IMG/VR virus record: IMGVR_UViG_3300035661_000001 | Location: 62,001-126,000 of that record | Reading direction: 5' to 3' (one strand) | Length of the DNA: 64,000 bases | In this document: piece by piece, positions 894 to 58,805 of the stretch | Numbering within the stretch: position 1 is the first letter of the stretch | Layout: every line of letters starts with the position of its first letter | Translations under genes and position numbers: made by a program | Notes under the pieces: model-generated | Told to the model about the DNA's origin: nothing | Databases searched by the model: none | What the model saw: only the letters and a program-made list of their open reading frames with translations

Positions 894-3077
894 ATGGACG
901 AAGACGAGGATGACATTGAACAAGTAGATGCGCCAGCACCAGCTGAGGTGCCAGCTCCAATCGCCCAACCTGCCCAGCAAGTAGTTGAGAGAGGCGGCTT
1001 TGCAGCTTTCCAAGCCGCATTGGTTGCGGCAGGCGAAGCTGCCAGAGTAGTTAATCGCAACGTCATGAATTGGGGACGTATTGAGGAAGCAGATCGGCAA
1101 GTAGATCAACTTCTTGAGGAAGAGGAACAGCTTGTCGATGAAGCTTTTCATGAAGCGGAACATCGACGTCTTCATGATATAGAAGCGGGTCAAGTTCGAC
1201 CACGAGGCATAAATTGGTTTAGAGAGCTGGCTGTTAACGGCGGTGTCTTCGGCAGAGAAATTGCACCGAGACAAGCGGTTCCACAACCTGCGCTACCAGG
1301 ACCATATGTGCCATATGTAGCGTATCAGGAACGAGTACAAGATCCAATCTTCATCAACGACGACGATATACAACGAGCAGCAGCAAGACTTAGGGAACAA
1401 TTGAATGTTCCCGATCCATTCAACGAGGAAGACCCAAGAGCGGTAGGAAATGATATGAATTACGATCAATTGGTGAGACGTTTTCCAGCTTTGACTGATC
1501 GGTATCTTCCCGATCTTTCCAACCGGAACAACGCAGCCCGAGCACTTCAGCAGTTCGATCTCGATCAGTCTGGTAATGCTGTGGAGCGTGATCTGGAGCG
1601 TAATGCCCTCACCCTTTACCTCGCCGGTCATGCTCAGGCAGCTAACATCAACTATGCTTGGTGTGCCGAATGTGAGATGATGATTGGATTTGAAAATCAT
1701 ACTCACTGTCCGTTTTGTACCTATGCCATGGTTGAGCGTGGTGAGGGTGAGGCTCGTGGATCTCATCATCGAGATGGTTGTGCCAATTGTGGCGAATGCT
1801 GTCGAGTGAAGGGTCACCAGCACTGTCCTTCTTGTGATGCCCACATGGAACGAGGTTGTCGTTATTGTGGTAAGTGCGCAGCATGTTGTGCATGTGTCCT
1901 GTGCACTGTGGCGGGTTGCCAGTACATGCAGGAATGTGAGGATTGCAAGAAGTGCTATGAACACTGCACTTGTGTGGCAGTTGCATCTTCTGATCCCACT
2001 GGCAAGATTTATCCTGCGGGGAAACCTAGCGAACGTCGACAGTTTGATTCTGAGAGACTCTCTGGTATTGAGTGGGAGTACAATCGTGCGGCTGATACAC
2101 GTGCCATGGATCACTGGTGTAAAAAGTGGCGCGGTCATATCCACCGTGACGACTCTTGTGGTTTTGAAGCAGTGAGCGCTCCGGTGGCTGGTGATTACAT
2201 GGTCCGATGTATCACCTCTCTTGGAAAGGTTCTGACTCGGGCGACGATTGATGATCGATGTTCGATTCATACCCATGTTGATGCCAAGGATCTTCAATGG
2301 ACCGATATGTTTCGATTCTTGGACCTGTACGCCAGAGTCGAGCCCATCCTGTACATGATTGCTGGACAGGAGCGACTTGATAACAGATATGCGGTTCCGA
2401 TTGGTAAGGAATACGCAGTTGCATTGAAGCGAGTTGATCGCAAAGATGCTATCATGGCAGTAGCCTTCTGCCCTCTCGAAAGAGATGGTCGTAAGCACAC
2501 TGTGACTACGATGCCTGATCACGGCAGAAACTCTCAGAGAGAGAAGCCTGGACGGCGCGCTGATAATCATCAGTATTGTCGGCGTAAGGGTCTCAACATT
2601 CTTCCTTGGTTGGCAGGACGAGGTCCCAGACCTCAGACTCCCATCAACGCTCCGGTCAAGGCTGGAGATACATTGGAGAAGTTGGCTCACCGTCACGGTG
2701 TATCAGTGGCAGCTCTGATGCGTTGGAACAAGGTCAAGCCCGGTGGTAAACTTGGTAAGACTATCGTTATCAACAAGAGAACTCTTGCACCTGACACTAC
2801 GGTGGAATTCCGAATCCATCCGAACACTCATGACCCGATTCGAGTAATCAATTGGGTTAAGATGGTGAATCAGTTGGTAGAATGGGCTGCGACGAAAACA
2901 GATAAGGATCTGGAGAGCTTGCCGAAGTCTCCGCTCCGAATTCTGTGTGAGCATGTCGTACCTGAGTGTGCTCCTTGGATCATGGCTCGGGTCAAAGAAT
3001 GGCGTAAAGAAACGGCGAGAAACATCGGGCGTCAAGCCCGCCGAATTACCATTAAGGGTGGAAAGTACGTGTACTGA
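894..3077 (+). CDS. Putative amidoligase (Amidoligase_2 / GS-like fold) with Cys-rich region and inserted LysM domain
   Basis: 'GIEWEY', 'DDSCGFEAVSAP', 'CSIHTHVDA', 'TVEFRIH' motifs; LysM-like 'VKAGDTLEKLAHRHGVSVAALMRWN' at about 2652-2775; dense CxxC tract at about 1655-1975. Confidence 0.8.
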   Translation: MDEDEDDIEQVDAPAPAEVPAPIAQPAQQVVERGGFAAFQAALVAAGEAARVVNRNVMNWGRIEEADRQVDQLLEEEEQLVDEAFHEAEHRRLHDIEAGQVRPRGINWFRELAVNGGVFGREIAPRQAVPQPALPGPYVPYVAYQERVQDPIFINDDDIQRAAARLREQLNVPDPFNEEDPRAVGNDMNYDQLVRRFPALTDRYLPDLSNRNNAARALQQFDLDQSGNAVERDLERNALTLYLAGHAQAANINYAWCAECEMMIGFENHTHCPFCTYAMVERGEGEARGSHHRDGCANCGECCRVKGHQHCPSCDAHMERGCRYCGKCAACCACVLCTVAGCQYMQECEDCKKCYEHCTCVAVASSDPTGKIYPAGKPSERRQFDSERLSGIEWEYNRAADTRAMDHWCKKWRGHIHRDDSCGFEAVSAPVAGDYMVRCITSLGKVLTRATIDDRCSIHTHVDAKDLQWTDMFRFLDLYARVEPILYMIAGQERLDNRYAVPIGKEYAVALKRVDRKDAIMAVAFCPLERDGRKHTVTTMPDHGRNSQREKPGRRADNHQYCRRKGLNILPWLAGRGPRPQTPINAPVKAGDTLEKLAHRHGVSVAALMRWNKVKPGGKLGKTIVINKRTLAPDTTVEFRIHPNTHDPIRVINWVKMVNQLVEWAATKTDKDLESLPKSPLRILCEHVVPECAPWIMARVKEWRKETARNIGRQARRITIKGGKYVY

Positions 3078-10483: not shown

Positions 10484-11494
10484 ATGTCTAAAAACTTTAT
10501 AGAAAAATTGAAAAGCAGAATTCGTGCCCAGAAGGATGGTATTCCTTTTGACAAAAGTGAATCCTATTATGATTCAGAAGACATGAGGCAAGTTCCGTTT
10601 GATTTCTTTTCAAACAGATATACTGATCGTTACAAGGACGCAAAAGAGATTGAACAAGAAGCTTTTGTAAAAAAGTATTTTGACATGTCTTGCGGGTACT
10701 TGCATTTAAGCTGGGATATCGATGCCTTTTGGACAGAGGTTGCGGAGAAGGTAATGATCCCATATGTTCAAGCAATTTATCGCGAGCTGGTCCGTCTAGG
10801 TCATGATGAATCTAATCCATGTATGTATGGTGATGCGGACGGTGATATGTTCTGGGTCCCAGCTCCAAATCCAGATACAATGGTTTTAGTTCAAAAAGAT
10901 CAGCAAGGTAGAAAGTACCTTTACGTTTGCACTGAAAATGGAACTGTCTACGATTACCCATCCAGCAGATGGAATTTTCATATCCGCCAGTTCTGGGAAA
11001 GATATCAAGACGACCCAGAAAATTGGAGGTTGGATGAATTGTACTCATGTTATAGCAAAGTCTCCATGCGCGATTTGGAATGCCTGAATTCTTCTAAAGA
11101 AGATCTAGAATCTTTTAGTAAAGAAGAACTTATTGAATTCATTCAGAAAGACGACAGAAAAAGAATGTCTCCTGATGAGTTCATTAAAAGCATTTTGACC
11201 CGTGTAGATAGTTATGCGGAATTATCTGATGATCATTATCAGTATACCCATCGTCATAGTCTGGACTTCTATAAACAACGAGGTTTCAATTTTCAAAACT
11301 ATCGTGAACCGTTTAATAACATCTATGGTGATGGTAGAGACGGCGGCTATATTATCTCAATCAAGAGCCATCGAGCAGAAGATTTGGTAAAAAATTTCCA
11401 CGCATTGGAGATGATTGCAACCTGTCATCTTCCTTGTCTGGCGAGCCAGCTTGATTTAGATGTTGACATAACTTGGATTGGTAAAAACCAATAG
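10484..11494 (+). CDS. Hypothetical protein
   Basis: 336-aa ORF, GAGG upstream. Confidence 0.6.
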   Translation: MSKNFIEKLKSRIRAQKDGIPFDKSESYYDSEDMRQVPFDFFSNRYTDRYKDAKEIEQEAFVKKYFDMSCGYLHLSWDIDAFWTEVAEKVMIPYVQAIYRELVRLGHDESNPCMYGDADGDMFWVPAPNPDTMVLVQKDQQGRKYLYVCTENGTVYDYPSSRWNFHIRQFWERYQDDPENWRLDELYSCYSKVSMRDLECLNSSKEDLESFSKEELIEFIQKDDRKRMSPDEFIKSILTRVDSYAELSDDHYQYTHRHSLDFYKQRGFNFQNYREPFNNIYGDGRDGGYIISIKSHRAEDLVKNFHALEMIATCHLPCLASQLDLDVDITWIGKNQ

Positions 11495-15172: not shown

Positions 15173-15250
15173 TAATTACGTCCTCTATACGGCTAAGACA
15201 CCTGATTTAATTTCAATCAGACAAAATGGGTTCGATCCCCGTCGGAATTG
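15173..15250 (+). pseudogene. Degenerate tRNA (Glu-like)
   Basis: Intact T arm (GGTTCGATCCC) and CTGATT/AATCAG stem, mismatched acceptor and D stems, abnormal anticodon loop. Confidence 0.45.
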
Positions 15251-15264
15251 TTTTGGAGTTTAAC

Positions 15265-16098
15265 ATGATAAATATTCGTACTTCGGTTTTTGAAACCAAT
15301 TCTTCCAGCACTCATAGTATATCTATCGCCAGTAACGCTGATGGTATCTTGGGGACCATAGTGCCCAATGATGAGGGCGTGATCATTCTGACAGGCGGAG
15401 AGTTTGGTTGGGCTTGGGATAAGTTTAACGATGCAATAACCAAAGCTAATTATTGTGCGGTGGATGCTGCTGAGCACGCTGAGCACTCACACATGCTTGC
15501 AGAAGTGCTTGCTGAGCACACTGGAGCTAAAAAGATTGTTTTTGCTATCGATGATGGAAGTTATATCGACCATGACTCAACTGGAGCTTCTGGTGAAGCT
15601 TTTCAATCACCAGAGAAATTGAAAGATTTCATTTTCAATTCTAAATCTTGGTTGTTTACTGGAAATGATAATGATGATAGTCCGCCAAACTTTTATGATG
15701 TAGAAGATGATATCGTTTACACATATGAGTTGAAAATGGATGGAATTGATTTTTCAACTAAATTCTCAGAGAAACCTTCTCCTAGCGATGTGGAAGAGGC
15801 TGCTGAGAAGATGGCGAAAAAGCATCCTGCAACAATAATTAATCGCGAAGATTTTGAAGATTACATTGATCATGAACCATACATGGTATATCCCTATGAC
15901 TTGAAATTGTATGACGAGACTATCGTCAACTCTCTTAATAAAATCGATCAAGGGCTGATAACTCTTTATCGTGTTGAACGTATGTGGCAACGTAAAGAAT
16001 CATCTATTACTAAATCTAACCGTGAAGGACTAGCCGTTAAGGGAGATGCAGTAATGGATTCTATTGACATTTCTTTTCAGTTAATTCCGATAGAATAA
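15265..16098 (+). CDS. Conserved phage protein with N-terminal 'FETNSSSTHS' motif
   Basis: 'MINIRTSVFETNSSSTHSISI'; listed 15226 start lies inside the pseudo-tRNA. Confidence 0.6.
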   Translation: MINIRTSVFETNSSSTHSISIASNADGILGTIVPNDEGVIILTGGEFGWAWDKFNDAITKANYCAVDAAEHAEHSHMLAEVLAEHTGAKKIVFAIDDGSYIDHDSTGASGEAFQSPEKLKDFIFNSKSWLFTGNDNDDSPPNFYDVEDDIVYTYELKMDGIDFSTKFSEKPSPSDVEEAAEKMAKKHPATIINREDFEDYIDHEPYMVYPYDLKLYDETIVNSLNKIDQGLITLYRVERMWQRKESSITKSNREGLAVKGDAVMDSIDISFQLIPIE

Positions 16099-16411: not shown

Positions 16412-17356
16412 ATGCCGAAAATATATGGATTCTCTTGGAAACAAAAAGAAGTGAAACTTCTACATTCTTATCTTAACGGAAATTCACATGTGTGTCTGTA
16501 TGAAGATGGAACAAAAGAACGAACATATAATGGAATTCCTGATGCCACTCATCCAGAATCCATTGACGTAAAGATTACTAATTACTGTGATGCTGGCTGT
16601 AGTTATTGTCATGAGAAATCTACAATAGCCGGATCACATGGTGATCTAGATGTTTTGACTGAAACTCTGAGTTGCCTGCCGGCAGGAGTAGAAATTGCTA
16701 TTGGTGGTGGTAATCCTCTTTCCCATCCACAACTGGTTCCTTTTCTTACAGCTATGAAGGCTCAAGGATTGATTTGCAATATTACAATCAATCAAAAACA
16801 TTTGAAAGAGTATAAAGATTTAATTCTATCTCTTATTTACCAGGAGTTGGTATATGGTGTAGGAATTTCTTATTCTTCAAAAGTTTATTTGGAAAATATT
16901 AAACCATTTCTGGAAGCTTCTTCTAATGTTGTATTCCATGTAATCATGGGTATTAATGGAGTTTCTGACATTGATGATTTGATGAACGTGTGTCAGACAC
17001 ACGCACGTGTGTGTAAGATTCTTATCTTGGGCTATAAAAGCTATGGGTTTGGATTAAACTACTATTTGAAAAACAAAAGGATTGAAGATGTAAAATATCA
17101 ATGGTATACTAAATTGGCTACTTATTTTAAGAAGCCCGATTTGGTTTTGTCATTTGATAACTTGGCAATTTCTCAAATGAATCTCAAGCGTTTCTTTACC
17201 GGAGCAGCATGGGATAAGTTTTTCATGGGCACTGACGGTCAGTTCACTTGCTATATCGATGCCGTGGAACAACAGTACGCTATGTCTAGTACATCTTCAG
17301 ATAGAGTTTCTTTCAAAGAAAAAGATCTTCTTTCATTTTTTGTTTCTTTGAAATAG
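16412..17356 (+). CDS. Radical SAM protein
   Basis: CxxxCxxC 'NYCDAGCSYCHE', 'AIGGGNPL', 'NITIN'; true start may be downstream of 16412. Confidence 0.9.
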   Translation: MPKIYGFSWKQKEVKLLHSYLNGNSHVCLYEDGTKERTYNGIPDATHPESIDVKITNYCDAGCSYCHEKSTIAGSHGDLDVLTETLSCLPAGVEIAIGGGNPLSHPQLVPFLTAMKAQGLICNITINQKHLKEYKDLILSLIYQELVYGVGISYSSKVYLENIKPFLEASSNVVFHVIMGINGVSDIDDLMNVCQTHARVCKILILGYKSYGFGLNYYLKNKRIEDVKYQWYTKLATYFKKPDLVLSFDNLAISQMNLKRFFTGAAWDKFFMGTDGQFTCYIDAVEQQYAMSSTSSDRVSFKEKDLLSFFVSLK

Positions 17357-17640: not shown

Positions 17641-18119
17641 TTTTTCAAAAGAACAGGTACAAATGAAAATCTACGAGAATGTTCAGCGGTTTGATAGCAA
17701 AACTGGTAAGCCGTATTTTGTGAAACGATTCAAGGAATTCCGTTGTGATTTTTCCGGTCAACTGATTGACGAGGATGATCTGGAGACCTATTTCTATCCA
17801 TCTTACAATCTGGATTACGAAAGCTCGGATCCCTGTTTCGGATCTTGTGGCGATGAGTATGAGTTCGGTCAGAAACATGACGTCGCTATGTTTGAATTTC
17901 TGAGCGACACCTATCATTTTCGCAATGATATCGATCCTGATGGTCATGGATTTATCGATCAATCTGTTAAAATGATGCAGCACTATCTTCCGGATAGGCT
18001 TTCGTTTGCGGAGATGTGCCGCACTAGCCGCATCGTAACCGCCGAGAAACTCATCGAAAGCGGAGAGATTGCTGCCGATCAACTGTCTCTTTAAGTATAA
18101 ATAGTTCTGATATATTAAT

Positions 18120-18191
18120 GGTTCCATCGTTCAACGGCTAGGACGGCGGCTTCTAACACTGCCTATAAGGGTTCGACTCCCTTTGGAACCA
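18120..18191 (+). tRNA. tRNA with CTA anticodon in the canonical register (possible amber suppressor; alternatively a degenerate Arg-TCT)
   Basis: Acceptor GGTTCCA/TGGAACC, D stem GTTC/GGAC, loop TTCTAAC, T arm AAGGG-TTCGACT-CCCTT. Confidence 0.7.
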
Positions 18192-18213
18192 TCCATTTAA
18201 TTTAAGGGTTTAA

Positions 18214-18360
18214 TATGAAAATATATTTATTTGCGGGTGCATGTGCGTTTGTTTTTTTTGGTTGCGGTTCAGATGAACCACAATGTAGAATCCCTTGTCC
18301 ATTTCATATGGATGAATTGTGTTGGGAAGATTGTACTCAAGCACCACCAGGTACTCCATA
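18214..18360 (+). CDS. Small Cys-rich lipoprotein (not in ORF track)
   Basis: MKIYLFAGACAFVFFGC|GSDEPQCRIPCPF...; lipobox-like FFGC. Confidence 0.5.
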
Positions 18361-24477: not shown

Positions 24478-24813
24478 ATGAATAAATTTTCATTACTATC
24501 TCTGTTGCTTGTAACTGGTTGCACATGGGGCAGCCCTCCATGCCCCGAACTATCGAACGATGATAAAGATGGAATATATCTTCGAAACTTAGGGTCTGTT
24601 GTAATTGATAATGAATCATGTTCAATTATTGAAACAATCAAAAAAACTGATTGTATTATCCAATAGGGTTGGAACCGCGGTCCATCTTGTAAAGGCGAAT
24701 GGATGAGTTGTAATACACAGGTTCTTACTCGATTTACTAAATGTCCTTCAGGAACATTTTCAAATACAATAACTTATTCTTCAGATAAGTTTCATAGAGA
24801 ACAAGTAGAATGA
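24478..24813 (+). CDS. Lipoprotein interrupted by an in-frame TAG at 24664-24666
   Basis: Lipobox VTGC; frame stays open 48 codons past the TAG, to a TGA overlapping the next ATG. Confidence 0.5.
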
Positions 24814-32621: not shown

Positions 32622-33206
32622 TAATTTTTAAAGCCGATTTCTTCACTATTGGATCAGATGATGATTACAATCAAAAAGATTTTCTAAAGAATCTAGAAAA
32701 TAATTTCCAATATTTTAGTGCTACCCTTCATACTCATGATGACTATAATCACTATGATCCTTGCTATATATTTGAAAGCATAGATGACGCTTTAGATGAA
32801 GCCGCAAACCATGAGGCTGTTGGTGTAAAAATTTCTAAATTCGTTTTGGATGAGGATGATTGTAAAGAACTTTTAATTTCTAGGAATTTGAAAGTTCCTT
32901 CAGAAAAAGTATATTATTCTTATAATGAAACGACCCAAGAGTTGGAAGAATTCCAATTAAAAATTTTCCTGTAATAATCTATGTTAAAAAATATTAAAGT
33001 AGCTAAACTGATTGAAGAACTTCAGAAATATGATCAAGAATCTACAATTTCTGAAGTTAATTTATCTGGTGCAGAATTGATTTCTTGGAGAAATGATCCG
33101 AAGAACCCATCGTGGGTAAGATATAAAAACAGATATAAACATGATGACAAACCATGCTCATGTGGATATGTTCCATGGGATGGTTTACCTTTTTGAAAAT
33201 AAAATT

Positions 33207-34547
33207 ATGACTAGAGTTAGATTTGCTCCTAGCCCAACAGGAACGCTTCATGTTGGCGGGGTGCGTACGGCATTGTACAATTGGTTATGGGCTCGCAAAA
33301 ACGGTGGGAAATTTATTCTCCGCATTGAAGATACCGATCAAGTCCGTAATGATCCTGCTAGTTATAATAACATTTTAACAGCTCTGGATTGGCTTGGACT
33401 AGATTGGGATGAGGGTCCTAATGTTGGTGGAGATCATGGTCCTTATACTCAATCAGAGCGCCGTGACTTGTATAAAACTTGTGCTAATCTTTTAATAGAC
33501 TCCGGTAAAGCTTACCGTTGCAATTGTAGTTCTGACGATCTCGATCGCATGAGGCACGAATTTCGAGGCAGAAATGTTAAAGATACTTGGAAATACCCGG
33601 GCGTTTGTCGAGATAAAAACGTTTCTTCAGATGTACCTCATGTAGTGAGATTGATTGTTGATCCTGGGCAAGTCGTCTCATTTGACGATCTTGTTTTTGG
33701 TAATATCAAAACTCCTACATCCTCTCTTTATGATTTTGTTATCATGAGAGAGAATGGCGTGCCGCTGTACAATTTCGCGGCAGTCATTGATGATTACCTT
33801 ATGGATATTTCTTTGGTAGGTCGTGGTAAAGATCATTTGATTAATACTCCTCCTCAGATTCTAATCTACCAAGCTTTAGGTTGGAAGACTCCTGATTTTG
33901 CACATTTACCAATGTTGCTTAATCAAGATAATGTAAAACTCTCCAAGAGAGACGGCGCGGTCTCGGTGGATCAATTCAGAGAACTTGGGTTTTCAGCCAA
34001 TGGGCTTTTGAATTATTTAATGAGATTTGGTTGGGCTCATGGTGATAAAGAGCTTTTCTCCATGCAGGAGATGATTGATTTATTCTCTTGGGATAAATGT
34101 AAAAAATCAGATGGTAAGTTTGATTTCACAAAAGCCACGGCAATCAATGGTAAAAATCTTATCAATGATCAGTTGGTACCTGATAAGGTATATACTGATG
34201 ACTTGAAGAAGTTCATCCCTGATATTACCCCCGACAAAATAGCTCTAGTAAGGGCTAAGGCTAAAACTTACAAGGAGTCGGCAGCCTTCTTGTCATTCTT
34301 CACTGACGGCTCTCTTAATGGTCCCCCGGCGGATATGGATCCTGACGATAAGGCTCATGTCGAGACGTTTTTGAATATGTATCCTGTTTTGATTGTCAAT
34401 AAAGACAGAAATGCATTTTTGGACCTTACAAGGAAGTATTGTGAGTCTCATGATGTTCCTTTTGCAAGGATTTCTCAGGCGTTAAGATATTGGTTTACAC
34501 ACAGAACGGTTGGACCTGATATCTATCAGATAATGACTTATCTGTAA
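33207..34547 (+). CDS. gltX: Glutamyl-tRNA synthetase
   Basis: 'RVRFAPSPTGTLHVGG', 'RIEDTD', 'WDEGP', 'YTQSER', 'YNFA.VIDD', 'KLSKR'; true start is Met23 of the listed ORF. Confidence 0.95.
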   Translation: MTRVRFAPSPTGTLHVGGVRTALYNWLWARKNGGKFILRIEDTDQVRNDPASYNNILTALDWLGLDWDEGPNVGGDHGPYTQSERRDLYKTCANLLIDSGKAYRCNCSSDDLDRMRHEFRGRNVKDTWKYPGVCRDKNVSSDVPHVVRLIVDPGQVVSFDDLVFGNIKTPTSSLYDFVIMRENGVPLYNFAAVIDDYLMDISLVGRGKDHLINTPPQILIYQALGWKTPDFAHLPMLLNQDNVKLSKRDGAVSVDQFRELGFSANGLLNYLMRFGWAHGDKELFSMQEMIDLFSWDKCKKSDGKFDFTKATAINGKNLINDQLVPDKVYTDDLKKFIPDITPDKIALVRAKAKTYKESAAFLSFFTDGSLNGPPADMDPDDKAHVETFLNMYPVLIVNKDRNAFLDLTRKYCESHDVPFARISQALRYWFTHRTVGPDIYQIMTYL

Positions 34548-55702: not shown

Positions 55703-55776
55703 GTCTCTGTAATTCAACTGGATAGAAACGCAGTCTTCTAAATTGTGAGTTGTAGGTAGGAATCCTACCAGAGACG
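55703..55776 (+). tRNA. tRNA-Arg(TCT), non-canonical T loop
   Basis: GTCTCTG/CAGAGAC; GCAGT-CTTCTAA-ATTGT; A20; T loop TAGGAAT. Confidence 0.8.
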
Positions 55777-56186
55777 CTAGCTTCAGCCACCCCGAGACTA
55801 AGGGAAGGTTTAGTTAACAAACCATATGAAAATATGTTAGGTTAGTGTCTGAGGATAATTTTTCGATGGTTATTAAGATCCTTCCTTCTACTATAATTAA
55901 ATAATAAAACCAGGGTTTTAGCTTTCCATCAAAATTTTTCAATTGTAAGGAATTATATGAGTAATACCAAAAGAGATGTAACTCCTGGTTGGAATCCTTC
56001 AGATCCACATTGGTGTTACGGAAATATGACAGAAAAATACCAGGCGAGAGATAGGTCTGAAGGTAAATGTAAATCAAGTAAGAACCATAGATTTACAAAA
56101 GGCATAAAGAATACGAAGTACAATCTTCAACAAAAAATTGAAGATTTAAGTTTGGAAGAAGAACTAAGTTTAGTTTGAAATTTCGT

Positions 56187-58439: not shown

Positions 58440-58690
58440 TGAAAAATACATTTAGGTACGGAAATGTTGATTTGTCTGAATGGAAATATTTAGAATGGTA
58501 AGTTGAAGGAAAAAAGTTTTCCAAAAATCCATTTGAATTTGAAATAAAATGGACACAAAAAACTGATCATGCCGGACTTTCTTTTACATTTTCAATATAT
58601 AAATTATTTTGGATAAATGTAAATATACATGATCGACGTCATTGGAATTATGACAAGGATACTTGGGAAAAGTATTGAATTTTTAATTAC

Positions 58691-58805
58691 GTTGTAATAA
58701 GTGTAATGGTTGCAAAGCTCCTAAGAAGTTATACATGTGTTCGACTCACATTTATCCCGGTGGATATAGCAAGGAGGGAAAAGGTTCGATTCCTTTATTA
58801 CAACA
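58691..58805 (+). ncRNA. tRNA-like RNA with a 49-nt structured insertion replacing the anticodon loop
   Basis: 8-bp acceptor GTTGTAAT/ATTACAAC, D-loop-like AATGGTT, CTCCT/AGGAG stem, canonical T arm; second T-arm-like hairpin inside the insert. Confidence 0.65.

Follow-up and report, generated by a model that had tools for sequence, protein, structure and literature searches.

Discussions of phage suppressor tRNAs mostly treat them as instruments of stop-codon recoding, or as brief preludes to it. Phages in which TAG is recoded read this codon as Gln and carry their own release factor 2 (RF2), and suppressor tRNAs are also present in standard-code relatives of recoded phages, where they have been proposed to represent a step before recoding (Borges et al., 10.1101/2021.08.26.457843). 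Among huge phages, RF1, RF2 and aminoacyl-tRNA synthetases are already on record. Making infected cells read through stop codons, without a change of code, is already known in phages but poorly understood. RF2 terminates translation at UAA and UGA, not at UAG. Among the amber suppressors of E. coli, supE is a tRNA-Gln whose anticodon changed from CUG to CUA, and su7 is a tRNA-Trp whose anticodon changed from CCA to CUA.

Here we examine a tRNA gene with the anticodon CUA in a 64,000-nucleotide stretch of DNA, referred to as the window, which comprises bases 62,001-126,000 of a 451,956-bp virus record (G000). G000 has a GC content of 36.5%, direct terminal repeats and 41 tRNAs, and is rated 100% complete by CheckV. 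The runs that contain the sequence are microbial-mat and sediment metagenomes, and none of the runs with the locus is an RNA run. The GenBank phage collection yielded no close relative of G000, and two relatives were compared in full: G006 (IMG/VR contig 3300036715_004471, 446.5 kb) and G008 (432.8 kb, 97% complete). Gene calls are based on ORF and codon-score heuristics rather than on a trained gene finder, and positions are those of the window unless given as genome positions. We consider it probable that the gene is functional and gives partial read-through of UAG during infection, although the phage retains the standard code and encodes an RF2 of its own.

Results

A tRNA gene with the anticodon CUA

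ARAGORN identified 18119-18195 as a tRNA with anticodon CTA, and an Rfam search of the whole window gave an RF00005 match at 18120-18191 (48 bits against a cut-off of 29, E 3.6e-07). We take the gene, referred to as family A, to be these 72 nt on the plus strand, which also have an ortholog in G006 and a counterpart on a contig from an independent sample. The acceptor stem (GGTTCCA at 18120-18126 with TGGAACC at 18184-18190) is followed by U8 and C9 (TC), a D stem (GTTC/GGAC) enclosing the D loop AACGGCTA, in which G18 and G19 are followed by C20, U20a and A21, and then a single G. The anticodon stem (GCGGC at 18146-18150, ACTGC at 18158-18162) consists of G-C, C-G, G.U, G-C and C x A, and encloses the loop TTCTAAC. 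The 3' half comprises a 4-nt variable loop (CTAT), a T arm (AAGGG/TTCGACT/CCCTT) and the discriminator A73.

The anticodon CTA, which reads UAG, lies at 18153-18155 (+), flanked by U33 and A37, and position 38 is C rather than A. The loop is closed by positions 31 and 39 (C18150 and A18158, +), which do not form a Watson-Crick pair and are the sole non-canonical pair marked by Rfam. The original prediction had proposed exactly this anticodon in a 7-nt loop closed by a C31:A39 mismatch, and ARAGORN, Rfam and direct reading all bear it out. The outcome that the original prediction named as refuting, an indel restoring a 7-nt Arg loop, does not occur: no run contained an indel in the loop. The cloverleaf is the minimum free energy (MFE) fold, at -24.5 kcal/mol (z -2.46 versus shuffles). 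The gene thus has the features that define the tRNA class, namely a cloverleaf, U8, G18G19, TTCGA, a 7-nt loop with U33 and a score above the gathering cut-off, and it carries the amber-suppressor anticodon CUA at positions 34-36, as do the ortholog and the independent sample.

Two features of the ARAGORN output were set aside. The program draws an 8-bp acceptor stem with a discriminator U and an encoded CCA, but the ortholog has C at position -1 and a CCT tail; since the extra T:A pair and the 'TCCA' tail are not conserved, we assign the gene a standard acceptor stem of 7 bp followed by A73, with the CCA not encoded. The program also labels the gene 'Pyl', which is merely its name for a CTA anticodon. 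In a tRNA-Pyl, the acceptor and D stems are separated by a single base, the D loop is small and lacks G18G19, and the T loop is non-canonical. The window tRNA, by contrast, has two bases between these stems (U8 and C9), an 8-nt D loop with G18G19 and the canonical T loop TTCGACT, so that the CUA anticodon is the only feature common to the two. A promoter scan found no promoter near the gene, and Rfam found no ribozyme or other RNA beside it.

Conservation of the tRNA and of CUA anticodons in the clade

The family A tRNA has a syntenic ortholog in G006 (L002:8824-8895). The radical-SAM gene upstream of the tRNA (16412-17356) has a 70% identical ortholog in G006, the G006 tRNA sits 1.9 kb downstream of that ortholog, and proteins neighbouring the tRNA are 65-70% identical between the two genomes. 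The tRNAs themselves are identical at 64 of 72 positions, while their flanks cannot be aligned. Of the eight differences, one is in the T loop and seven are in stems, and all seven stem differences keep the pairing state: pair 27-43 is G-C in the window and C-G in G006, pairs 11-24, 12-23 and 29-41 are G.U in one genome and Watson-Crick in the other, and pair 31-39 is C x A in the window and A x C in G006, unpaired in both. A contig from the independent sample (X4) spans 17957-18291 with zero differences from the window. The G006 ortholog has the same 7-nt anticodon loop, as does a third CUA variant, from X4. This variant, on a contig of ~250 nt that aligns to window positions 18139-18184, shares the 3' strand of the D stem, the anticodon arm, the variable loop and the T arm with family A; its anticodon stem has G-C at 29-41 and C31 x A39, and its acceptor stem differs (..CGTTGG / TCAACGC), with A73 and an encoded CCA. 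This covariation, drawn from two full sequences and one partial one, indicates that purifying selection acts on all four stems and the loop. That the gene, its loop and its stems are kept in a diverged relative argues for function.

Pattern searches of viral contigs for family A returned G006 as the only further ortholog, and matches to the 3'-half pattern proved to be unrelated tRNA-Phe genes. One metagenome scan contained no family A tRNA, five distant relatives gave no match to a covariance model of the two orthologs (R1), and in G008 the tRNA is absent both at the syntenic site and elsewhere.

Whole-genome ARAGORN searches identified a second, unrelated CUA tRNA, referred to as family B, at syntenic sites in G006 (320811-320884) and G008 (58637-58710; L171, G008:C1) and absent from the syntenic site in G000. 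The body of family B is Asn-like, with U1-A72 and G73, and apart from a C35-to-U change its anticodon arm matches the one in the phage tRNA-Trp. Consequently, each of the three near-complete genomes of the clade (G000, G006 and G008) contains at least one CUA tRNA, and G006 contains two. The two family B copies differ in their anticodon arms: pair 31-39 is U-A in G008 and C x A in G006, and the G008 copy has C33, a position at which U is nearly universal.

G000 also contains other tRNAs of unusual structure. At genome 60357-60426 (L142:2358-2427), 1.6 kb before the window, a tRNA scoring 41.8 bits with Rfam has the 6-nt loop AUCUAA, which can be read as CUA, or as UCU if one U has been lost; G006 yielded no ortholog of it. 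Within the window, a weak tRNA-like element at 15174-15250 (+) scores 24 bits with Rfam, below the cut-off, and 31.9 bits with the two-ortholog model. It has an anticodon loop of ~11 nt, overlaps the start of the ORF at 15226-16098, and may be a decayed tRNA. The terminal repeats (genome 42-243 and 451744-451945) each contain a tandem pair of identical tRNA-Arg(UCU) genes, whose anticodon stem has just three Watson-Crick pairs.

It could be argued that the family A tRNA, however well conserved, is not an active suppressor, being uncharged or poorly decoding, and that it either serves some other purpose, for instance by diverting host nucleases that target tRNAs or by acting in processing or regulation, or is a slowly decaying relic. 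C38 and the 31-39 mismatch in its anticodon arm could indeed result in poor decoding, no client gene was found (see below), and the genome does hold other odd tRNAs, among them the 6-nt-loop tRNA and the tRNA-like remnant. However, the selection on its four stems and loop, the canonical U33, A37, G18G19 and TTCGA of the T loop, and the independent maintenance of CUA across genomes by two unrelated families all speak against an inactive tRNA, and the last of these is hard to explain without UAG decoding. We regard inactivity as unlikely. If the tRNA is instead a functional one that reads UAG in part, C38 and the unpaired 31-39 suggest a weak suppressor, by analogy with E. coli suppressor studies.

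A phage RF2 and a phage GluRS

A release factor that does not recognize the suppressed codon, i.e., RF2 for UAG, is part of the known recoding toolkit, and G000 encodes one at genome 407,194-408,282 (L149:1695-2783). The protein contains SPF and GGQ motifs. Against the prfB model (cut-off 370) it scores 402 bits, versus 227-238 bits against two RF1 models; it is thus RF2. The gene is a single ORF with no frameshift site, and small Cys-rich (CxxC) paralogous ORFs flank it. RF2 is present in 7 of 7 related records, with orthologs of 58-100% identity in G006, G008 and four further IMG/VR contigs. These four contigs all use the standard code and showed no CUA tRNA; being 42-48% complete with 0-1 tRNAs each, they are uninformative on whether such a tRNA is present. 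RF2 did not hold up as a marker coupled to the family A tRNA, since it occurs in fragments in which no CUA tRNA was seen and family A is missing in G008. Taken together, RF2 and CUA tRNAs across the clade fit a manipulation of UAG decoding.

A gene for a glutamyl-tRNA synthetase (GluRS) lies at 33141-34547 (+), 15 kb downstream of the CUA tRNA (Pfam tRNA-synt_1c, 4.7e-88; NCBIfam gltX_bact, 403 bits), and has orthologs on phage contigs of 447-466 kb. It is a possible charging enzyme for the CUA tRNA. It may be of either the discriminating or the non-discriminating type: its best PDB match is T. maritima GluRS2, but phmmer gave no alignment of its anticodon-binding domain with T. thermophilus GluRS. 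The closest cellular homologs are from Polyangiaceae/Myxococcota, at 46-48% identity. G006 also carries an IleRS-like gene and, adjacent to it, a class II synthetase gene of the Asp/Lys type.

Usage of TAG

If TAG were a sense codon throughout the genome (code 15), coding density under code 11 should be low and should be restored by reading TAG as sense, and in-frame TAG codons should be numerous. Neither signature was present. Greedy ORF tiling gave a density of 91.0% under code 11 and 91.1% with TAG as sense (0.910 versus 0.911). In the codon-score gene set, the 572 genes of G000 end in TAA (305), TGA (236) or TAG (31), and ten of those in the window end in TAG. The original prediction, which had noted several such genes here and favored partial or timed read-through over full recoding, is consistent with a genome in which density is 91% under code 11, TAG makes up 5% of stops and no in-frame use is specific to TAG. 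The TAG share of stops is 5.4% in G000, 5.0% in G006 and 10.1% in G008, compared with 22-24% among background stop trinucleotides. A share of ~5% is also normal for many bacteria.

The in-frame extension after TAG has a median of 10 codons, similar to that after TAA and TGA, and TAG stops are conserved between orthologs in just 1 of 10 cases in G006 and 2 of 9 in G008. They are unevenly distributed, with 15 of 31 in the first 100 kb and 2 of 31 at 200-350 kb (enrichment, p 0.004; depletion, p 0.003), a regional bias that largely parallels a general preference for TAA (TAG versus TGA, p 0.05-0.11).

We then considered every in-frame stop that is spanned by an open frame in a relative, using G000, G006 and G008. 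Within conserved genes, this screen identified one true-frame TAG in G000 and one in G006; the latter is in a small gene, at a position where G000 has Lys. Conserved genes contain in-frame TAA and TGA at a similar frequency, so there is no TAG-specific signal. Examples of the other stops are a TGA at genome 3451, opposite Arg in a relative, a TAA at genome 307710, opposite Gln and Lys, and TGA or TAA at 260003 and 154849 of G006, inside genes that are uninterrupted in relatives. The residues aligned to these four sites are Arg, Gln, Lys or Glu. Such sites may represent nonsense variants that the assemblies have fixed, may mark split genes, or may have another cause.

The G000 site is the only candidate client in the window, a lipoprotein-like gene at 24478-24813 (+). 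Its ORF runs for 62 codons to a TAG at 24664-24666, which is followed by 48 conserved in-frame codons up to a TGA at 24811-24813. In the G006 ortholog the frame is unbroken and Ala occupies the position of the TAG. Four contigs, assembled by JGI and Logan, contain the TAG. The terminal TGA overlaps the ATG of the next gene. On sequence grounds this gene is a candidate client, no more, because the similar rate of in-frame TAA and TGA makes its TAG indistinguishable from an ordinary nonsense mutation.

Several other arrangements that could be taken for read-through were rejected. At three junctions where TAG lies between coding sequences on both sides (genome 14380, 73492 and 136891), the downstream genes have their own ATG within 3-13 codons; of these, the 73492 junction was compared with G006 and is not conserved there. 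Two minus-strand ORFs of 615 and 405 aa joined by a TAG (genome 28.7-31.8 kb) are antisense shadows, with plus-strand matches of e-159 against e-66, and the sites at genome 303726 and 388295 are likewise shadows, lying antisense to strong genes on the plus strand. Antisense ORFs of unusual length face genuine plus-strand genes at 1293-2696 (-) in the window and generally at genome 9-65 kb. Such ORFs can be aligned between relatives at 30-40% identity, and can thus mimic genes and TAG-joined fusions.

On another reading, TAG would be sense in a subset of genes, to which the tRNA would then be essential. The lipoprotein-like gene with its conserved downstream part, the small G006 gene with TAG where G000 has Lys, and the presence of RF2 with a CUA tRNA, which is the toolkit of the TAG-recoded Lak and Agate phages, are what such partial recoding would predict. 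Yet reading TAG as sense adds nothing to a density of 91%, in-frame TAA and TGA are equally frequent in conserved genes, and the remaining TAG junctions are adjacent genes with their own starts, that at 10484/11504 being unconserved in G006, or antisense shadows. We consider partial recoding very improbable. No gene that demonstrably needs suppression was found by the extension, in-frame-stop and ortholog-stop comparisons.

Candidate amino acids

The amino acid that a functional tRNA of this kind would insert is not callable from the sequence, and the candidates are Gln, by precedent, Glu and Lys. The D arm, TCGTYCAACGGCTAGGRC, is found exactly in bacterial tRNAs for Gln (75), Trp (20), Glu (16) and His (4). 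Among the paralogues of G000 and G006, the two-ortholog covariance model places Gln(CUG) and Trp closest; in G008 it places Asp and Glu(CUC) closest. The same acceptor sequence, GGTTCCA followed by A73, occurs in the G008 tRNA-Glu(CUC) and also in a tRNA-Arg(ACG) of LR745206, an unrelated 635-kb phage. The anticodon stem most resembles that of the phage tRNA-Trp, with C31 x A39 common to both. CUA itself differs by a single base from each of CUG (Gln), CUC (Glu) and CCA (Trp). A Glu-like appearance is given by G1-C72, U20a and the variable loop of 4 nt, while Lys is also compatible with A73 and U35, as in E. coli suppressors. Assignment of an isotype by nearest neighbor was abandoned as ambiguous. 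The C31 x A39 mismatch is found in the tRNA-Trp(CCA) of both G000 (genome 137426-137499) and G006 (L146:1498-1571); the bacterial tRNA-Trp genes compared have U31-A39.

G26 (18145) and C44 (18163), both conserved between the window tRNA and the G006 ortholog, are able to pair, which yields a 5-bp anticodon stem and a 9-nt loop. The original prediction had offered, as an alternative, a degenerate Arg tRNA with a 9-nt loop centered near TCT; this part did not survive, because the shifted register pairs poorly in both orthologs, CUA remains at the center of the 9-nt loop, and the tRNA has a Gln/Glu/Trp/Asp-type body. Its observation that C20 here replaces the A20 of the window's Arg-UCU tRNA (55703-55777) was correct for both genes. 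A degenerate tRNA-Arg(UCU), or a 9-nt-loop tRNA decoding a non-triplet such as a quadruplet around UAG (frameshift suppression), is extremely improbable: positions 31-37 (CTTCTAA) do match the loop of phage Arg-UCU tRNAs, MFE and RNAalifold do favor G26-C44 and the 9-nt loop in both orthologs, and a tRNA-Arg(ACG) of another huge phage does share the acceptor and D stem, but the shifted register has only two pairs in either ortholog, the A20 and C35 determinants are replaced by C20 and U35, the closest paralogues are Gln, Trp, Asp and Glu, and we know of no frameshift sites here.

Discussion

Under partial read-through by a functional tRNA, the transcript would be processed, receive its CCA and be charged by a host or phage synthetase. 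The charged tRNA would then decode UAG against host RF1, resulting in partial read-through of amber stops during infection. The phage itself would be largely insulated: TAG terminates only ~5% of its genes and hardly any at 200-350 kb, and where it does, a back-up stop within ~10 codons (median) would limit the extension. Its own RF2 would serve the other 95% of its genes, which end at UAA or UGA. The phage may benefit by tolerating amber mutations, which would pre-adapt it to recoding, or by damaging the termination of the host.

A more specific proposal, which we judge quite improbable as a whole, is that the clade (~430-450 kb, standard code) stably keeps UAG read-through, by means of its RF2 and the two unrelated CUA families, to derail host termination or to tolerate amber mutations, and not for its own genes. 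The family A tRNA, with G1-C72, A73, U20a, a 4-nt variable loop and the acceptor of the clade's tRNA-Glu(CUC), would be charged with Glu by the phage GluRS. If true, the locus would provide a natural phage-borne synthetase/suppressor pair that inserts Glu at UAG. More generally, if the tRNA is active, read-through may be valuable in itself, through host sabotage, mutational robustness or expression timing. The tRNA, RF2 and GluRS are a compact set of testable parts for viral tuning of termination, and the locus may yield a natural suppressor/synthetase pair.

The window tRNA resembles the laboratory suppressors supE and su7 in having a body of the Gln/Trp/Glu type and an anticodon one base from CUG, CUC or CCA. 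It differs from them in being a natural, conserved gene, and in having G1-C72 and A73 where the Gln suppressor has U1-A72 and G73 and the Trp suppressor has A1-U72 and G73, as well as C38 where they have A38. With the Lak, Agate and crAss-like phages (code 15, TAG as Gln), the present clade shares a CUA tRNA and a phage RF2. Those phages have many in-frame TAG codons in late genes and a low code-11 density; here, density is 91% and no in-frame stop usage is TAG-specific.

A close match is to the standard-code phages of Borges et al., which likewise combine low GC, a rare stop codon, its cognate suppressor tRNA and code 11. In those phages the suppressor is opal; here it is amber, and the carriers are environmental phages of ~450 kb from mats and sediments. 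The state looks stable here, with two CUA families and RF2 maintained at 60-70% protein identity and no recoded relative found. It is this apparent stability across such divergence, together with two independent CUA lineages and no recoded relative, that appears less expected from what is known of phage suppressor tRNAs.
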